Positions 30,287 to 46,011 of a stretch of DNA of 51,617 nt are shown piece after piece; within the stretch, counting starts at the first letter, position 1, and every line of letters begins with the position of its first letter. Under the pieces are notes generated by a model. The model did no database searches and was not told where the DNA came from. It saw only the letters and a list, made by a program, of their open reading frames with translations. The position numbers were made by a program, and so were the translations under genes. The stretch comes from Guillardia theta CCMP2712. Taxonomy: Eukaryota > Protista > Cryptophyta. The DNA lies in contig NW_005434484.1 of NCBI RefSeq assembly GCF_000315625.1, positions 35,871 to 87,487 of the forward strand. Direction: 5' to 3'.

Positions 30287-32106
30287 ATGGATTCTAGCGG
30301 AGCTGCATCGGCGGAGGTTGACGATTACGCATTCAAGGCGCTCGAAACTAAAGAAGATTGAAGTCTTGGAATCCAAGTCTGAGGTGGAAGCTTCGATGAT
30401 GATGATCATGAGGAGGGGGGAGGAGGAGGAGGAGCAGGAGGAGCAGGAGGAGCAGGAGGAGCAGGATGAGGAGGTCCTTCTTGGCTCATCAGTCTCCCAC
30501 CAGGTGGCGAAGCATCGGGGATACAAGAACTCAGATATCGAGCTGGTCATCAAGAAGTTGGTGGAGGAGAACGCGCTGGGGATCGATGTGCAGGTACATT
30601 TGACGACGTTTGCCGCCCTCTCTTGACCATGGCACAGCCTGTGGCGATCTGCTATGACATGGATGCTCTGAAGGAGACTCTCTGTGCCCTCAAGTGACCC
30701 TCCCCTGGGCCCTTGCCCGTCCTCACCCTTTCCCCCAGGGTCGCGTTCCCCGGCAACTTCACTCACTGCATAGCGATCAAGAGCAACCCGCTTCCTTTCT
30801 TCTTGAAGTTCGCCGTGAGGATGGGCTGCGGACTGGAGGCTGCGTCGTACGCCGAGGCGCTGCTGGCCTTGAGGTGGGTTTGACGCTTCTTCCTCCTCCT
30901 GAGCCATGCTGAACCCCTGCTGAAGGACTGGCTGCCCTCCGGACAAGATTATGTTTGACTCCCCAGCTAAGACCCGAGCTGACATTCGGTTTGCGCTCGA
31001 GTACAACATCCAGATCAATGCCGACAACTTCTTTGAGCTTGATCGCATCGCGGAGGAACGGAAGAAACTGGAGGTGAAGGACTCGTCTACCTTGTCTTTC
31101 CCCCCTCTCCTCTTGCTATCCCATGCTCCTTCCTGCTCCCTGCGATCTCACGCGCAAGCTGCCACAGGACTCGGGGTTCCTGTCGTCGTCGGTGATCGGG
31201 CTGCGGATCAATCCGCTGGTGGGAGAGGGGAAAATCAAGTCCCTGTCGGTCTCGGACGAGAGCTCCAAGTTCGGCATCGCACTCACCGCAGACGCCAAGA
31301 CGGTGATCCTCGAGTACTTCCGCCGGTTTTCCTGGCTCTCCGCTCTGCACTGCCATGTCGGGTCGCAGGGCTGCACGCTGTCCCAGCACGCGCAAGGAGC
31401 GAAGAAGCTGTTCGAGCTGTGTGAAGAGATCAACAGGGAGGTGGGCAGCACACGAATCAGGCGCATGGACATCGGAGGGGGGCTGCCGGTGAACTTCGAG
31501 TCGGAGGAGATCTCTCCGACCTTCGACGTCTACGCTAAGACCCTCAAGGAGGAGGTTCCCGCCCTCTTCCGCGGCGACCTCACCGTCATCACCGAGTACG
31601 GGCGGTCAGTCAGCGCCAAGGCTGCGTGGGCTGCATGCTCCATCGAGTACATCAAGACTATCTCTGCGGACTACGAGATCGCCGTCATCCAGGCAGGAGC
31701 TGACCTGTTCCTACGCACCTGCTACGTCCCGTCCAACTTCTCCCTCCGCGTCACAGGGCATCACAGACACTCGGGGAAGGAGCTGCAGCCGCACGCCGAG
31801 AACGTCAAGGCCGGCAGCGAAGTCGCTCGCCGGGTGAAGCGATACGACGTGGCGGGCCCGCTGTGCTTCGGAGGAGACAAGATCACCGTAAACCGCTCGA
31901 TGCCGCAGCTCCTCGTCGGCGACTTCGTCGTGGTGCACGACGTCGGAGCCAACACGCTCTCCATGTTCTCTCGCCATTGCAGCAGGCAAGCGCCTCCTGT
32001 CTATGGTTACCGCAGGCGTCAGGAGGGCGATGGGGTCGAGGTTGTTCTGATAAAGGAGATGGAGCCTGTCGAAGACGTCCTCAGGTTCTGGTCTTGTCCC
32101 TTGTAA
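30287..32106 (+). CDS. lysA: PLP-dependent group IV decarboxylase, diaminopimelate decarboxylase-like
   Basis: PLP-lysine motif HCIAIKSNP, GLEAAS, FDSPAKT, INADNF.EL, GLRINP, SKFGI, LHCHVGSQ, DIGGGL, TEYGRS and VAGPLCFGGD. Several short introns; stop TAA at 32104-32106. The start codon is uncertain and substrate specificity is inferred. Confidence 0.8.
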
Positions 32107-33995: not shown

Positions 33996-34036
33996 CTTTA
34001 CTCAAAGTTAAGTTAAAAATCAGTACGAGGACAATC
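33996..34036. repeat. Dispersed 41-bp motif, copy 1 (ctttactcaaagttaagttaaaaatcagtacgaggacaatc)
   Basis: 40/41 identical to 45944-45984; the first 32 nt match 37119-37150 with one mismatch. Confidence 0.9.
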
Positions 34037-34597
34037 CGGAGAGTAGTGAGTCCTGAGTGAGTTGCTGAGGGGACTCGATCCGGGCCGGCCGGCCGTCCCT
34101 GGCCCGCCGGCCGGGCCGGCGGCCGGCGCGGCCGGCCGAACAGGCTGACCGTCTTCCGGTAAGTCACGGTCCACGTTAACAAGACTCAGAACAGCCGTCA
34201 CTATGTTTAAGGTTAAGAAGACCGGTATGCACGGTGCCTGGACATACGGCGATCAATGAGGAAAGAGAGATCCTGCTCAGTGATAGTCCTTGTGATTCGT
34301 TCAGAGTACTTCCCCGCGACTCAGAACTTACCTGAGACATCCCAGGTCAAGTCACAGTACTATTCCCGTACTAGTGAGTTACGTTCAAGTTCCAGACTGC
34401 CGTACCGGTTTCAAGTCAGCAGACTGAGCAGCTGAACCAAGACTCAACAAGCAGATTGAAGCGAAAGAACCTTGCCAAACAGAGCGATGCAACACAACAA
34501 GTTCAGCTCTGCACAAGCACTTTGGCATCCACCGTCCTCACTGAGTCATGTCGATCATGGCATCAAGTAGCAAGGCGAGAGTGTGAGGGCAACAGCC

Positions 34598-34755
34598 AGC
34601 ATGTCCTACTACCCTGACTACTACTACCTACCCCCTGGTCAGGGGTACGAGGTCAGAGGCAGCAAGCATGTCCTACTACCCTGACTACTACTACCTACCC
34701 CCTGGTCAGGGGTACGAGGTCAGAGGCAGGAAGCATGTCCTACTACCCTGACCAG
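34598..34755 (+). repeat. 67-bp tandem repeat (2.3 copies) in the IR1 left arm, mirrored at ~36531-36690
   Basis: atgtcctactaccctgac recurs at 34601, 34668 and 34735. Each full unit contains the hairpin cccctg-gt-cagggg. Confidence 0.9.
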
Positions 34756-34831
34756 GATCAGAGCATCAGGTAACAAGGCGAGAGTGGGAGGCCTCACGTC
34801 ATCATCAAGCGTCTATGCCGCACATCGCCTT

Positions 34832-35122
34832 TTATTGCTCACCCCTACACCCCTCAAGCCTCCTCCCTCCTCGCCGCTCTACCCACGCGCAGCTTGTCAA
34901 GGATCTGAGTACGTCTGGCTCGTGGGCATCGGTGAGAAGCTTGATGCAGTGCCGGAGGGCGTCGAGCTGCTTCCTGCGGCTGGGACCCGCGTCGTGACGC
35001 AGCAGGCTTGATGCGGATGTTCCATCGACGGGGGATGCGGAGGAGGAGGGCGGCTTGGCGGAGGAGGAGAGAGCATCAGGAGGCGAGGAGGAGGAGCAAG
35101 GGGATGGGACATGACGAGACAT
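34832..35122 (-). CDS. Small unknown protein, family copy A1 (96 aa)
   Basis: MSRHVPSP...GPSRRKQLDALRHCIKLLTDAHEPDVLRSLTSCAWVERRGGRR. The TAA stop overlaps AATAAA; paralogous to three other copies. Confidence 0.55.
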   Translation of the reverse strand: MSRHVPSPCSSSSPPDALSSSAKPPSSSASPVDGTSASSLLRHDAGPSRRKQLDALRHCIKLLTDAHEPDVLRSLTSCAWVERRGGRRLEGCRGEQ

Positions 35123-35145
35123 GCTTGACAGACGAGAACGGATTC

Positions 35146-35183
<38 letters not shown>

Positions 35184-36107
35184 CTTCGCCGGGATGTGCG
35201 CTAGAGAACAGGATGGAAAGAGCCGAGGGGTTGGACAACAGCACAGAGCTCAAGGGAGGGATGAACGGAGGATCGCAGGGGTAGGAGAGGGTGGACGAGG
35301 AGGAGTGGTGGGGGAGACGTGTGAGTGGAGGGAGGGAGGGGAGCAGTGATCTACTTCAACACTCTCCCCGCCTGCTTCGGGGTCTCCCTCCGTGACCCTC
35401 GTATCCCCTTTGGTAGAGCCCCGTGACCGGTCAGGATTATTATCTACTTTTAAAAGACAGTACCGCAGAGAGTTTACTCATCGAAGGTATGTCGTATCTA
35501 GTCCACGTAACCCAGCTCAGAGTCACGTCTCACAAGTTCGTGACCATCGGGTACGAAAGTGCGCCCAGTGAATCGGCGCCCCGAAGGTCGGCACAGTGAC
35601 AGCGAGCAGCCTCCTGTAAGCTTCTTCCCTTCTTCCCCTCGGATATAACACAGTACGGTACCTCCGGAAAAATCTAGAGAGTCACGAGGGCCCGAAGGCA
35701 GTCTCGAGCACCCACGAATCATATCCGAAGTTTCTCCGCCCCTCTAGAAGACGATTCAGTCGGTTGTATGTGATAGAGCATGACGACGAAGTGACCTCTT
35801 TTCGTATCATGATATGCTGTAAGCTTCGAATCCCCGGAGGTCCGGCAAGGAAGCCTGATATTTTGATACGCTCTCGTGATGGTATGTAAGTAAATCTGTA
35901 GTGGTACAAATGAAACCTGACGGGTCACGAGGACTGTACGAGATGCGAGGGTCACGGAGGGAGACCCCGAAGCAGGCGGGGAGAGTGTTGAAGTAGATCA
36001 CTGCTCCCCTCCCTCCCTCTACTCGCACGTCTCCCCCACCACTCCATCCCCTCTGTTAGTCCTCTCACGTGCATTCACACACCAGCATCCGTTCTCGTCT
36101 GTCAAGC

Positions 36108-36440
36108 ATGGCTCATCGTGACTCGTTATCCTCCTCCTCGCCTCCTGATGCTCTCTCCTCCTTCGCCAAGCCTCAGGCTCAGCATTCCTTGCAGCAGGGC
36201 CACCAGCTCTCCTCCCCCTCCTCATCCGCATCCTCCGTCGATGGATCTCCAGCATCCGCATCAAGCCTGCAGCGTCACGACGCGGGTCCCAGCCGCAGGA
36301 AGCAGCTCGACGCCCTCCGGCACTGCATCAAGCTTCTCACCGATGCCCACGAGCCAGACATACTCAGATCCTTGACAAGCTGCGCGTGGGTAGAGCGGCG
36401 AGGAGGGAGGAGGCTTGAGGGGTGTAGGAGTGAGCAATAA
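36108..36440 (+). CDS. Small unknown protein, family copy A2 (110 aa)
   Basis: Same gtcaagcATG context as A1, with the frame preserved despite indels in the Ser/Pro-rich N-terminus. Core RRKQLDALRHCIKLLTD; the stop overlaps AATAAA. Confidence 0.55.
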   Translation: MAHRDSLSSSSPPDALSSFAKPQAQHSLQQGHQLSSPSSSASSVDGSPASASSLQRHDAGPSRRKQLDALRHCIKLLTDAHEPDILRSLTSCAWVERRGGRRLEGCRSEQ

Positions 36441-37118
36441 AAGGCGATGTGCGGCATAGACGCTTGATGATGACGTGAGGCCTCCCACTCTCGCCTTGTT
36501 ACCTGATGCTGCCAGGGATGTTTCTGATCCTGGTCAGGGTAGTAGGACATGCTTCCTGCCTCTGACCTCGTACCCCTGACAAGGGGGTAGGTAGTAGTAG
36601 TCAGGGTAGTAGGACATGCTTGCTGCCTCTGACCTCGTACCCCTGACCAGGGGGTAGGTAGTAGTAGTCAGGGTAGTAGGACATGCTTGCTGTTGCCCTC
36701 ACACTCTTGCCTTGCTACTTGATGTCTGTCCTGTTGCATCGCTCAGTTGCCAGTCACAGTGTTTCTTCTTTTCCTGCACAAGGCTTGCGAGACTTTGACA
36801 TCCGAAGTTCAAGTAGAAACGCTTGAGCATGACCTGTGTATGCTGAGGCAGTTTGAGTAATCGGATCGGACAAGGCGGCTGACTGCTAGGGGGATCATCA
36901 GTGGAGAAGCTGACTTGGTCGGCAAATGAGGACGGGCAAGGTGGAAAGCAAATCTGAACTTTCGCACGCCAAACGTGACCTTGATCGCAACGCAGTCGCA
37001 GTTACTCACGAGCAGAGCGAGAGTCAGGCTCCTCAGATCGAACCTCGGAACATCCGAGTGTCCTAAGGCCCAGCCATTCCGCTCCTCACTATCATCTCCG
37101 GTGAACGTGACCCAGTTG

Positions 37119-37150
37119 CTTTACTCAAAGTTGAGTTAAAAATCAGTACG
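37119..37150. repeat. Dispersed 41-bp motif, truncated copy 2
   Basis: ctttactcaaagttgagttaaaaatcagtacg. Confidence 0.85.
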
Positions 37151-37357
37151 GGCGCCTGGCAGTGTAAGGAGTCACGAGGCGGAGACCTCGTGTAGTAAAG
37201 AACCATATCTAAAGTTTCTGCGCCCCCTTTCAAGGTTCCAGCCCCTCTACACGAGCCTGGCCCTCTTAAGATACAAGGCAGCCCCTCCCCGCACTCCCTG
37301 CTGCTTGGTTGTATACCTCCCTCTGACCTCTGACGTCTAGCTTCAGCCTCTGTCTTG

Positions 37358-37717
37358 ATGGCTCCTCCTCACGTTCTTCGTCCCGTCCTCCCCCTCCTCC
37401 CCCCTTCCCCCAGCTCGTCCCCGTCGCTTGACCTCTCGTTCTTGCCCTCCCCTCCCGCACCTGCTACGGACTCTGACTCTCCCCCCATGCCCTCGTCGAC
37501 TCCGGCCTCCTCTCTCCCTCCTTCCAGCGGCTCCTCCCTCGGCCTCGGCCCTACCCGCAGGAGGCAGCTCGACGCCCTCCAGCACTGCATCAAGCTCCTC
37601 ACCGACTCGGACAGGCCCGAGGCCCTCAAGTCCTTGCCGGGCGTCACCTGGACAGAACGCCAGGGACGGGGAGGGCAGGAGGCGAGCAGAAGAACAACGA
37701 GAGGAGGGGGGAGATGA
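37358..37717 (+). CDS. Small unknown protein, family copy B1 (119 aa)
   Basis: MAPPHV...GPTRRRQLDALQHCIKLLTDSDRPEALKSLPGVTWTERQGRGG, with AATAAA at ~37775. Confidence 0.55.
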   Translation: MAPPHVLRPVLPLLPPSPSSSPSLDLSFLPSPPAPATDSDSPPMPSSTPASSLPPSSGSSLGLGPTRRRQLDALQHCIKLLTDSDRPEALKSLPGVTWTERQGRGGQEASRRTTRGGGR

Positions 37718-38024
37718 CAAGGAGGAGGAGAGGAGGGAAGGGCTGTGTCGGTGTAGGGTGCGGATACGGCACGTAATAAAGACGTGATAGAAGCTTTCAC
37801 GGGAGGTTGGGCGAGGAGAGGAGAGGAGGATATCATGACAGGTGCTTGCAGTATTAGAGACCTCCGACTTTGACGAATATACCTCCGTACTCACCTTCGA
37901 GTCCTCAGCCACCCAGTCAGACTTTCCTCAAGGAAGTTGAGGCTGCTCTGTGCTGCTGTATGGTATCATAGCCTATCGCTCATTGTAACAGCATACTGCT
38001 GGCGTGCTCTCTCAGCCAACACCT

Positions 38025-38165
38025 CCTCCTCCTCTCCTATACTCGCCCAACCTCCTCTCCCATGCTCGCCCAACCTCCTCTCCTATGTATGCTTGGCCAA
38101 CCTCCTCTCCTCCCCTCGCCCAACCTCCTCTCCTCGCCCAACCTCCTCTCCTATGCTCGCCCAAA
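38025..38165. repeat. Short tandem repeat (ctcgcccaacctcctctc) in the IR2 spacer/inner arm
   Basis: About 6 imperfect copies of cgcccaacctcctctc. Confidence 0.8.
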
Positions 38166-38184
38166 CTTCCCGTGAAAGCTTCTA

Positions 38185-38631
38185 TCACGTCTTTATTACT
38201 GTAATTACTGCTGTATACACCCTACACTGCTTGTCCTCTCCCTCCCCTCCTCCTCCTTGTCCTCTCCCTCCTCCTCTCGTTGTTCTTCTGCTCGCCTCCT
38301 GCCCTCCCCGTCCCTGGCGTTCTGTCCAGGTGATGCCCGGCAAGGACTTCAGGGCCTCGGGCCTGTCCGAGTCGGTGAGGAGCTTGATGCAGTGCTGGAG
38401 GGCGTCGAGCTGCCTCCTGCGGGTAGGGCCGAGGCCGAGGGAGGAGCCGCTGGAAGGAGGGAGAGAGGAGGCCGGAGTCGACGAGGGCATGGGGGGAGAG
38501 TCAGAGTCCGTAGCAGGTGCGGGAGGGGAGGGAGGAGGGGAGGGCAAGAACGAGAGGTCAAGCGATGGGGAAGAGATGGGGGAAGGGGGGAGGTGAAAGA
38601 GGAGGTTGGGAGAAGGATACAGAGGAGCCAT
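38185..38631 (-). CDS. Small unknown protein, family copy B2 (148 aa)
   Basis: MAPLYP...GPTRRRQLDALQHCIKLLTDSDRPEALKSLPGITWTERQGRGG; inverted copy of B1 with a longer C-terminus. Confidence 0.55.
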   Translation of the reverse strand: MAPLYPSPNLLFHLPPSPISSPSLDLSFLPSPPPSPPAPATDSDSPPMPSSTPASSLPPSSGSSLGLGPTRRRQLDALQHCIKLLTDSDRPEALKSLPGITWTERQGRGGQEASRRTTRGGGRGQGGGGEGEDKQCRVYTAVITVIKT

Positions 38632-39009
38632 CAAGACAGAGGCTGAAGCTAGACGTCAGATGCGAGGTCAAATCAGACGCCAGACGTCAAGGGATGTATA
38701 GAGGGGCAGGCAACCATGTGGTAGGGATCCAGGTAACGTGACATAGCGGAACTAAAGGGGGCGGAGAACGGGGAACTCGGAATATATATCGTCAGCCTCG
38801 TGACTGCCTGAAGTGACTTGAAGGAGTCGCATGGGCCTTACAGGCGGATATTTCCATGTTGCCGTGCCAATGCCGTGAGAACAACTTTACGGTAGGAGTC
38901 ACGAGGAAAGTCAATTGATCATATTGAAAACGATTTTTAGTCAATAATTCAAGCACAGGCTAGGCCACTGTTGCCTCGCTACTAGCTTAGCCCACGGTAC
39001 TGAAAAGTT

Positions 39010-45943: not shown

Positions 45944-45984
45944 CTTTACTCAAAGTTAAGTTAAAGATCAGTACGAGGACAATC
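45944..45984. repeat. Dispersed 41-bp motif, copy 3
   Basis: ctttactcaaagttaagttaaagatcagtacgaggacaatc, followed by a palindrome and a GC-rich CCGG patch. Confidence 0.9.
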
Positions 45985-45987
45985 AGC

Positions 45988-46011
45988 CTGATGAGTCACA
46001 TGACTCATCAG
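45988..46011. promoter_or_regulatory. Perfect 11-bp-arm palindrome containing two TGA(G/C)TCA (AP-1/GCN4-like) sites
   Basis: ctgatgagtca-ca-tgactcatcag. Confidence 0.5.

Follow-up and report, generated by a model that had tools for sequence, protein, structure and literature searches.

The window analysed here is a stretch of 51,617 nucleotides (nt) of the cryptophyte Guillardia theta CCMP2712 (RefSeq assembly GCF_000315625.1, contig NW_005434484.1, positions 35,871 to 87,487), and corresponds to C190:35871-87487 of the 87.1-Mb, 669-contig G. theta assembly that we searched. It carries two adjacent inverted repeats, IR1 and IR2, each with a pair of related open reading frames (ORFs). An earlier sequence-only reading had described this cassette as twin palindromes, and both a repeat finder and a BLAST of 33.8-39.3 kb against itself locate the repeats where that reading had put them (Table 1). 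It was also right on the orientations: the two ORFs of IR1, A1 and A2, are divergent and point outward, and those of IR2, B1 and B2, are convergent and point inward. The arms of IR1 are 99%, 99%, 85% and 96% identical block by block, with indels between the blocks, and those of IR2 are 89% identical counting gaps and 98% identical over a core of 294 nt. A (GT)n microsatellite (35147-35183) is present in the A1 arm only, just upstream of the A1 start, as part of a 91-nt indel between the arms. The CT-rich repeat of IR2 has copies at 70-77% identity on contigs C327, C186, C89 and C13.

Table 1. Features of the cassette and its surroundings, with related palindromes elsewhere in the genome. Positions are those of the window unless a contig (C) or fetched locus (L) is named; palindromes elsewhere are given first by contig and then by fetched locus, and the two lists may name the same loci. 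CDS, coding sequence; aa, amino acids; HMM, profile hidden Markov model.
Feature	Position	Strand	Remarks
IR1 left arm	34561..35405		holds A1; inverted match to 35942-36724
67-nt tandem duplication	34593..34726		3' flank of A1; mirrored at 36533-36666 (repeat finder)
AATAAA of A1	34831-34836		mirror copy of that of A2
A1 CDS	34832..35122	-	96 aa; ATG at 35122; AATAAA overlaps stop; family HMM E=3e-31
IR1 spacer	35406..35941		unique, 536 nt; common 5' intergenic region of divergent A1 and A2
IR1 right arm	35942..36724		holds A2
A2 CDS	36108..36440	+	110 aa from ATG (123 aa from GTG at 36069)
AATAAA of A2	36436-36441		overlaps stop
IR2 left arm	37329..37829		holds B1
B1 CDS	37358..37717	+	119 aa; TGA 37715-37717; start 37355/37358
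AATAAA of B1	37775-37780		
IR2 spacer	37830..38141		312 nt, between convergent 3' ends of B1 and B2
CT-rich tandem repeat	38011-38178		18-27-nt period, unit ~CTCGCCCAACCTCCTCTCC; begins in IR2 spacer and enters right arm
IR2 right arm	38142..38660		holds B2
B2 CDS	38185..38631	-	148 aa; start 38631/38634
AATAAA of B2	38192-38197	-	
Upstream module	37170..37235	+	AGTCACGAGG ... GTAGTAAA ... TTCTGCGCCCCC; ~140-190 nt before B1 ATG
Related upstream-module copy	35680-35750	+	
Related upstream-module copy	38740-38805	-	
Dispersed ~45-nt element	33996-34045	+	
Dispersed ~45-nt element	37119-37166	+	
Dispersed ~45-nt element	45944-45993	+	
Decarboxylase-like ORF	31123-32106	+	carries PF02784 and PF00278 (Orn/DAP/Arg decarboxylase); probably an exon of the neighbouring gene upstream
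CDS-limited family palindrome	C71:58-60 kb		
CDS-limited family palindrome	C71:130-133 kb		
CDS-limited family palindrome	C71:342-344 kb		
CDS-limited family palindrome	C45:406-408 kb		
CDS-limited family palindrome	L029:3565-5053		fetched locus
CDS-limited family palindrome	L032:6785-7962		fetched locus
CDS-limited family palindrome	L034:3144-6095		fetched locus
CDS-limited family palindrome	L036:3335-4861		fetched locus
CDS-limited family palindrome	L037:3377-5312		fetched locus on C45

All four ORFs share the core GP(S/T)RR(K/R)QLDAL(R/Q)HCIKLLTD...W.ER.G, as had been proposed from the sequence and as our alignment bears out; the synonymous difference between A and B in the KLLTD codons and the AATAAA signal near every 3' end are equally well founded. 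The A1 and A2 proteins are 86% identical, with a 42-nt in-frame insertion in A2, and A and B proteins are ~46% identical to each other. The TGA stop of B1 aligns with GGA in B2, and this single T/G difference at 37715 makes B2 29 aa longer; the B2 ORF runs through its own AATAAA. A Pfam scan of the four ORFs gave nothing significant, a word-index protein search with A2 alone returned no match, and exact-sequence look-ups in public assemblies found neither A2 nor B1 on record.

With A2 as query, a six-frame genome search gave 28 matches, and a profile built from 18 members gave at least 84 on 33 contigs; 60 of the 84 fall in 18 clusters. For A and B the family HMM gives E values between 1e-31 and 1e-33. 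In agreement with the cryptophyte origin assumed in the sequence-only reading, one member matches, at 100% identity, GUITHDRAFT_113903 of G. theta CCMP2712, an annotated 103-aa protein encoded by an uninterrupted ORF and the sole match among the matches listed in a word-index search with the family profile. The A and B copies have the form seen in the family, that is, a single-exon gene of ~80-130 codons in a tandem or inverted cluster. Alignment and profile scores place A1, A2, B1 and B2 in a family of small nuclear genes without introns, of which literature searches found no description. Among 42 pairs of adjacent copies, 26 are tandem (13 of them in three long arrays on C62, C81 and C79), 8 convergent and 8 divergent. 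Because tandem pairs prevail, inverted pairing is common without being obligatory, and the question raised earlier of whether copies always sit in inverted pairs is answered in the negative.

The sequences of canonical members come from 20 fetched loci (~24 singleton copies lie outside this inspected set). They are ~100 aa long and encoded by intronless, uninterrupted ORFs of ~85-125 codons. An acidic-hydrophobic motif at the N-terminus (Q.DF..L.L or PSF.DLSL) is followed by a disordered acidic or Ser-rich linker and by the C-terminal block PSR.KQL.AL.H(C/S)I.LL...RP.V.SATG....(L/M), directly after which stands the stop codon. AlphaFold2, run on a canonical member with the family alignment, returns a helix at residues 71-86 and strands at 92-94 and 100-102 with a predicted local distance difference test (pLDDT) score above 90, the remainder being of low confidence; the C-terminal module is confidently predicted to be one amphipathic helix packed on a beta-hairpin. 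A Pfam scan of 35 family members gave nothing significant, and a sequence profile search of the PDB gave no match. Fold searches reached E=3.1 at best with Foldseek against the PDB, Z=3.2 at best in a wide VIA-align search and a TM score of at most 0.32 among Atlas folds; feature and structure look-alikes in the ESM Atlas stayed at chance level (Arm/IBB-like, 0.88-0.92, with few common features). A homodimer prediction for the C-terminal module gave no verdict (score 0.02) and speaks neither for nor against binding. The predicted make-up, a folded helix or helix-hairpin module joined to disordered acidic segments with short linear motifs, suggests that the family proteins may be docking or adaptor proteins.

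Searched exhaustively by profile, 1.84 billion representative proteins yielded only 38 matches at E ≤0.001, of which 30 were looked up. Those among them with a name all belong to G. theta CCMP2712 or to Hanusia phi, the latter as EukProt or MMETSP transcripts. Five have only a nameless ENA contig (0.65-1.6 kb) behind them, and two of these five fall into the same cluster as named G. theta proteins. On these matches, the family has been found so far only in G. theta and its sister H. phi. GUITHDRAFT_107930 is letter-identical to an MMETSP transcript product and many Hanusia members derive from transcriptome assemblies; therefore, the family as a whole is transcribed and older than the Guillardia-Hanusia split. 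In a maximum-likelihood tree there are at least eight Guillardia-Hanusia sister pairs. The same tree unites A1, A2, B1, B2, two copies on C144, the 72-kb copy on C71 and Hanusia P0028 in one clade with 100/100 support on a long branch; within it, A1 pairs with A2 (100/98), B1 with B2 (98/87), and A with the copy C144a (91/79).

A and B retain the conserved helix motif PSR.KQL.AL.H(C/S)I.LL (alignments and HMM), and AlphaFold2 on A2 gives a helix at 63-78 with pLDDT 84-94, followed by a low-confidence second helix where the hairpin would be expected. The hairpin sequence RP.V.SATG....(L/M)-stop is itself absent from A and B; in its place they have EP(D/E).L(R/K)SL....W.ER.G and then 15-45 aa more. 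At the N-terminus, B keeps PSLDLSFL and A keeps PPDALSSF, both within Ser/Pro-rich low-complexity sequence. The hairpin-less C-terminus is a derived state of the eight-member clade. Where the nearest canonical copies (on C45, C280 and C286) have their TGA, A, B, C144a and the 72-kb copy on C71 have GAG or GAA, and a codon-level comparison aligns the A tail with the 3' untranslated region (UTR) of the C280 copies; the sub-branch has therefore lost the ancestral stop and reads into the former 3' UTR. When read in frame past the TGA, the 3' UTR of the canonical copies (loci L037, L041 and L042, on C45, C280 and C286) resembles the A tail (window 36394-36440), and we therefore take that tail to be captured 3' UTR. 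The added tail is rich in Arg and Gly (ERRGGRR..., ERQGRGG...RGGGR). Selenocysteine or read-through at the TGA of the canonical relatives was considered and rejected, since A and B encode Glu at that position and not Cys. A1, A2, B1 and B2 thus belong to an old sub-branch that retains the helix but lacks the hairpin motif and the ancestral stop. The annotated relatives (GUITHDRAFT_113903, _113934, _114867-114871, _107929-107931, _145577) and the H. phi transcripts are uncharacterised and without a Pfam entry. A and B resemble them in the helix PSR.KQL.AL.HCI.LL, in length, in being intronless and in being clustered, but differ in being unannotated, in lacking the terminal hairpin RP.V.SATG....L-stop, in having at most a degenerate acidic N-terminal motif, and in having an RGG-like read-on tail.

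The simplest history of the cassette would be two independent local inverted duplications of neighbouring paralogues, one of type A and one of type B, because the spacers of IR1 and IR2 are not homologous. A one-event model, in which tandem duplication of an A-B pair is followed by a single inversion, predicts homologous spacers and was rejected on the self-BLAST. The split between A and B is older than the palindromes, since C144 holds an A-type and a B-type copy side by side in tandem. The arms of IR1 reach 270-280 nt past the CDS on both sides of A, and the arms of the window are 95-99% identical outside the CDS as well, which fits a young duplication. Their likeness could have been kept through recent duplication, arm-to-arm gene conversion or both, and slippage in the low-complexity N-terminal part would yield in-frame indels. 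At no fewer than five other family loci the inverted arms (275-620 nt, 93-99% identical) amount to the CDS +/- ~50 nt, and spacers and flanks are unrelated. Conversion is favoured for the family generally because arm identity repeatedly stops at the CDS borders, and the pattern at these loci suggests conversion tracts limited to coding sequence, between old paralogues. The idea of a gene family kept in palindromes by conversion, put forward from the sequence, is largely right: the family is real and large and has CDS-limited arms elsewhere, but palindromes are not obligatory for it and recent duplication fits the window.

Comparable arrangements are known. The human Y palindromes P1-P8 are ampliconic palindromes with arm-to-arm gene conversion, and Drosophila hsp70 at 87A is a converted inverted gene pair. 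The cassette is like them in its inverted gene pairs, 95-99% arm identity and unique spacer, and the other family loci share with hsp70-type concerted evolution the limitation of identity to coding sequence. Unlike those systems, the Guillardia arms measure only 0.5-0.85 kb, conversion is inferred, and no link to sex or stress is known.

We consider that the cassette as a whole is best explained by local inverted duplications of A and B genes that are members of an orphan Guillardia/Hanusia family and are not mobile, a reading to which we assign a probability of roughly 0.6. The palindromes could in principle be fold-back chimeras of the assembly: the cassette is without a spanning long read, and the DNA runs found are probably all from the original genome project. 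Such an artefact is nonetheless very improbable. Between the arms we count 38 substitutions each, besides indels of 1-91 nt; both palindrome centres, with their unique spacers and arm junctions (35372-35975 and 37775-38197), were independently rebuilt from reads in Logan contigs, although the underlying DNA runs of 2011 are probably those of the genome project itself; and similar palindromes occur at many other loci of the family. Both small palindromes are real. We give as little credence to the view, also advanced in the sequence-only reading, that they are non-autonomous foldback or inverted-long-terminal-repeat (DIRS-like) elements with a cargo ORF. Two compact inverted-repeat structures adjoin here and the family is multi-copy on its 33 contigs, and the cassette is like Foldback and DIRS-like retroelements in having inverted terminal repeats around a central segment. 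However, a whole-genome DNA search with 34400-38900 recovered only the cassette with its own arms, the coding cores on C144 and C71 (those on C144 at 74-80% DNA identity), a dispersed element of 31-45 nt and CT-rich simple repeats, which makes the non-coding arm DNA single-locus in the 87-Mb genome. Between family loci homology is confined to the CDS, many copies form plain tandem arrays, and inspection of the arm ends by eye shows no target-site duplication. The absence of transposase, reverse transcriptase (RT) and integrase noticed earlier holds up, the cassette ORFs being without a Pfam match, and no tyrosine recombinase, RT or transposase was found nearby; the only neighbouring ORF with a Pfam match is the decarboxylase-like one. 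Since the non-coding arms are unique, these enzymes are absent nearby and the flanks elsewhere are unrelated, the foldback or DIRS reading is unsupported. Unlike those elements, the cassette has arms that are not dispersed, ORFs inside the arms and unique flanks. It sits in ordinary gene-bearing DNA, and the four copies appear to be the product of ordinary local gene amplification.

Whether the four copies are live genes is a closer matter. Over the 38-codon core, A and B differ at proportions of 0.44-0.48 for synonymous (pS) and 0.20-0.21 for nonsynonymous (pN) changes, with a nonsynonymous to synonymous rate ratio (omega, dN/dS) of 0.31-0.37, and across the sub-branch the core omega is 0.24-0.65. 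Indels between arms inside the CDS (6, 42, 6 and 12 nt) are multiples of three in 4/4 cases, those outside it (26, 91, 13, 1, 2, 8 and 1 nt) in 0/7. The earlier claim of protein-level selection stands on these in-frame indels and on a core dN/dS of ~0.35, but has to be tempered: slippage bias adds to the indel pattern, because those indels lie in triplet-like low-complexity sequence, and the constraint on the four copies seems moderate. Several observations weigh against our reading. Arm to arm, dN/dS is ~1 (1.2 for A1/A2 and 0.7 for B1/B2, from few and partly misaligned differences). No reads fell on the four ORFs in the ~6% sample (764 million letters) of one RNA run, and 13 putative RNA contig sets held almost none of the sampled words. 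The A, B and C144 copies are unannotated and absent from every protein collection searched, transcriptome-derived sets included. One substitution moves the B stop by 29 codons, and the N-terminal motif and C-terminal hairpin of the family are degenerate in A and B, the canonical stop being lost as well. An open frame alone is weak evidence, because in this G+C-rich sequence of low complexity the opposite strand has ORFs just as long. The adaptor role is purely inferred, with fold and family searches giving no match, and for the pairs in the window recent inverted duplication does as well as conversion. The missing RNA reads and annotation, the lost motifs and stop, the arm-to-arm ratio and the shifted B stop also speak for decaying relics (pseudogenes), young inverted duplicates of an A-B pair without a working protein, whose palindromes would have arisen neutrally because inverted duplication is frequent in this genome. 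We think this unlikely, though far less so than an artefact or a transposon. The sub-branch is older than the Guillardia-Hanusia split and has a transcribed Hanusia member, W.ER.G is kept in A, B and C144a across a dS of ~0.7, at which divergence the core ratio was obtained, and coding indels between arms are all in frame. On balance we lean slightly towards the four copies being live but divergent genes.

The family is thus a new, undescribed orphan family, and its kind is familiar: small lineage-specific genes that are amplified in tandem and inverted clusters and evolve in concert. No new kind of genetic element comes to light in the cassette. It adds four unannotated genes to a reference cryptophyte genome and provides a motif, a fold model and a copy map for the orphan family, which has at least 84 members. 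The sub-branch is a clean example of C-terminal extension through stop loss into the 3' UTR, and short CDS-limited palindromes appear to be a recurrent route by which small genes amplify and stay alike in G. theta. This should be useful for re-annotation of G. theta, for studies of lineage-specific microproteins and for work on concerted evolution in protists. A bolder and rather doubtful extension is that the family consists of Guillardia/Hanusia-specific adaptors, in which a VP16-like acidic motif is joined to a new 35-aa helix-hairpin docking fold under CDS-limited conversion, and that A and B have been neo-functionalised with an RGG-type, possibly RNA-binding tail and are expressed only at, for example, a sexual or stress stage.

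Two kinds of short sequence accompany the genes. The upstream module, the third part of which reads TTCT(C/G)CGCCCC, is found 136-187 nt ahead of the B1 and B2 start codons and ~375-430 nt ahead of the A2 start codon. The sequence GTAGTAA or its complement, in either orientation, recurs in the 500 nt preceding family members at over half of the inspected loci, and TCT(C/G)CGCC is found at only 4 of 21 loci. A family-wide upstream motif was rejected: AGTCACGAGG and TCT(C/G)CGCC precede few members only, and there is therefore no promoter signature common to the family.

The dispersed element of ~45 nt, with the core ACTCAAAGTT(A/G)AGTTAAAAATCAGTACGAGGACAATCAGGAGAG, has 12 copies in the 222 kb inspected; in addition to the three copies in the window, nine lie in L032, L035, L037-L040, L044 and L047. 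Literature searches found no description of it. Its word depth in DNA contigs is ~2000, against ~6 for unique sequence. It often stands ~240-900 nt upstream of a gene in the same orientation, occurs in RNA reads and contigs, and could be a promoter or 5'-leader element used throughout the genome, or else a very short repeat.

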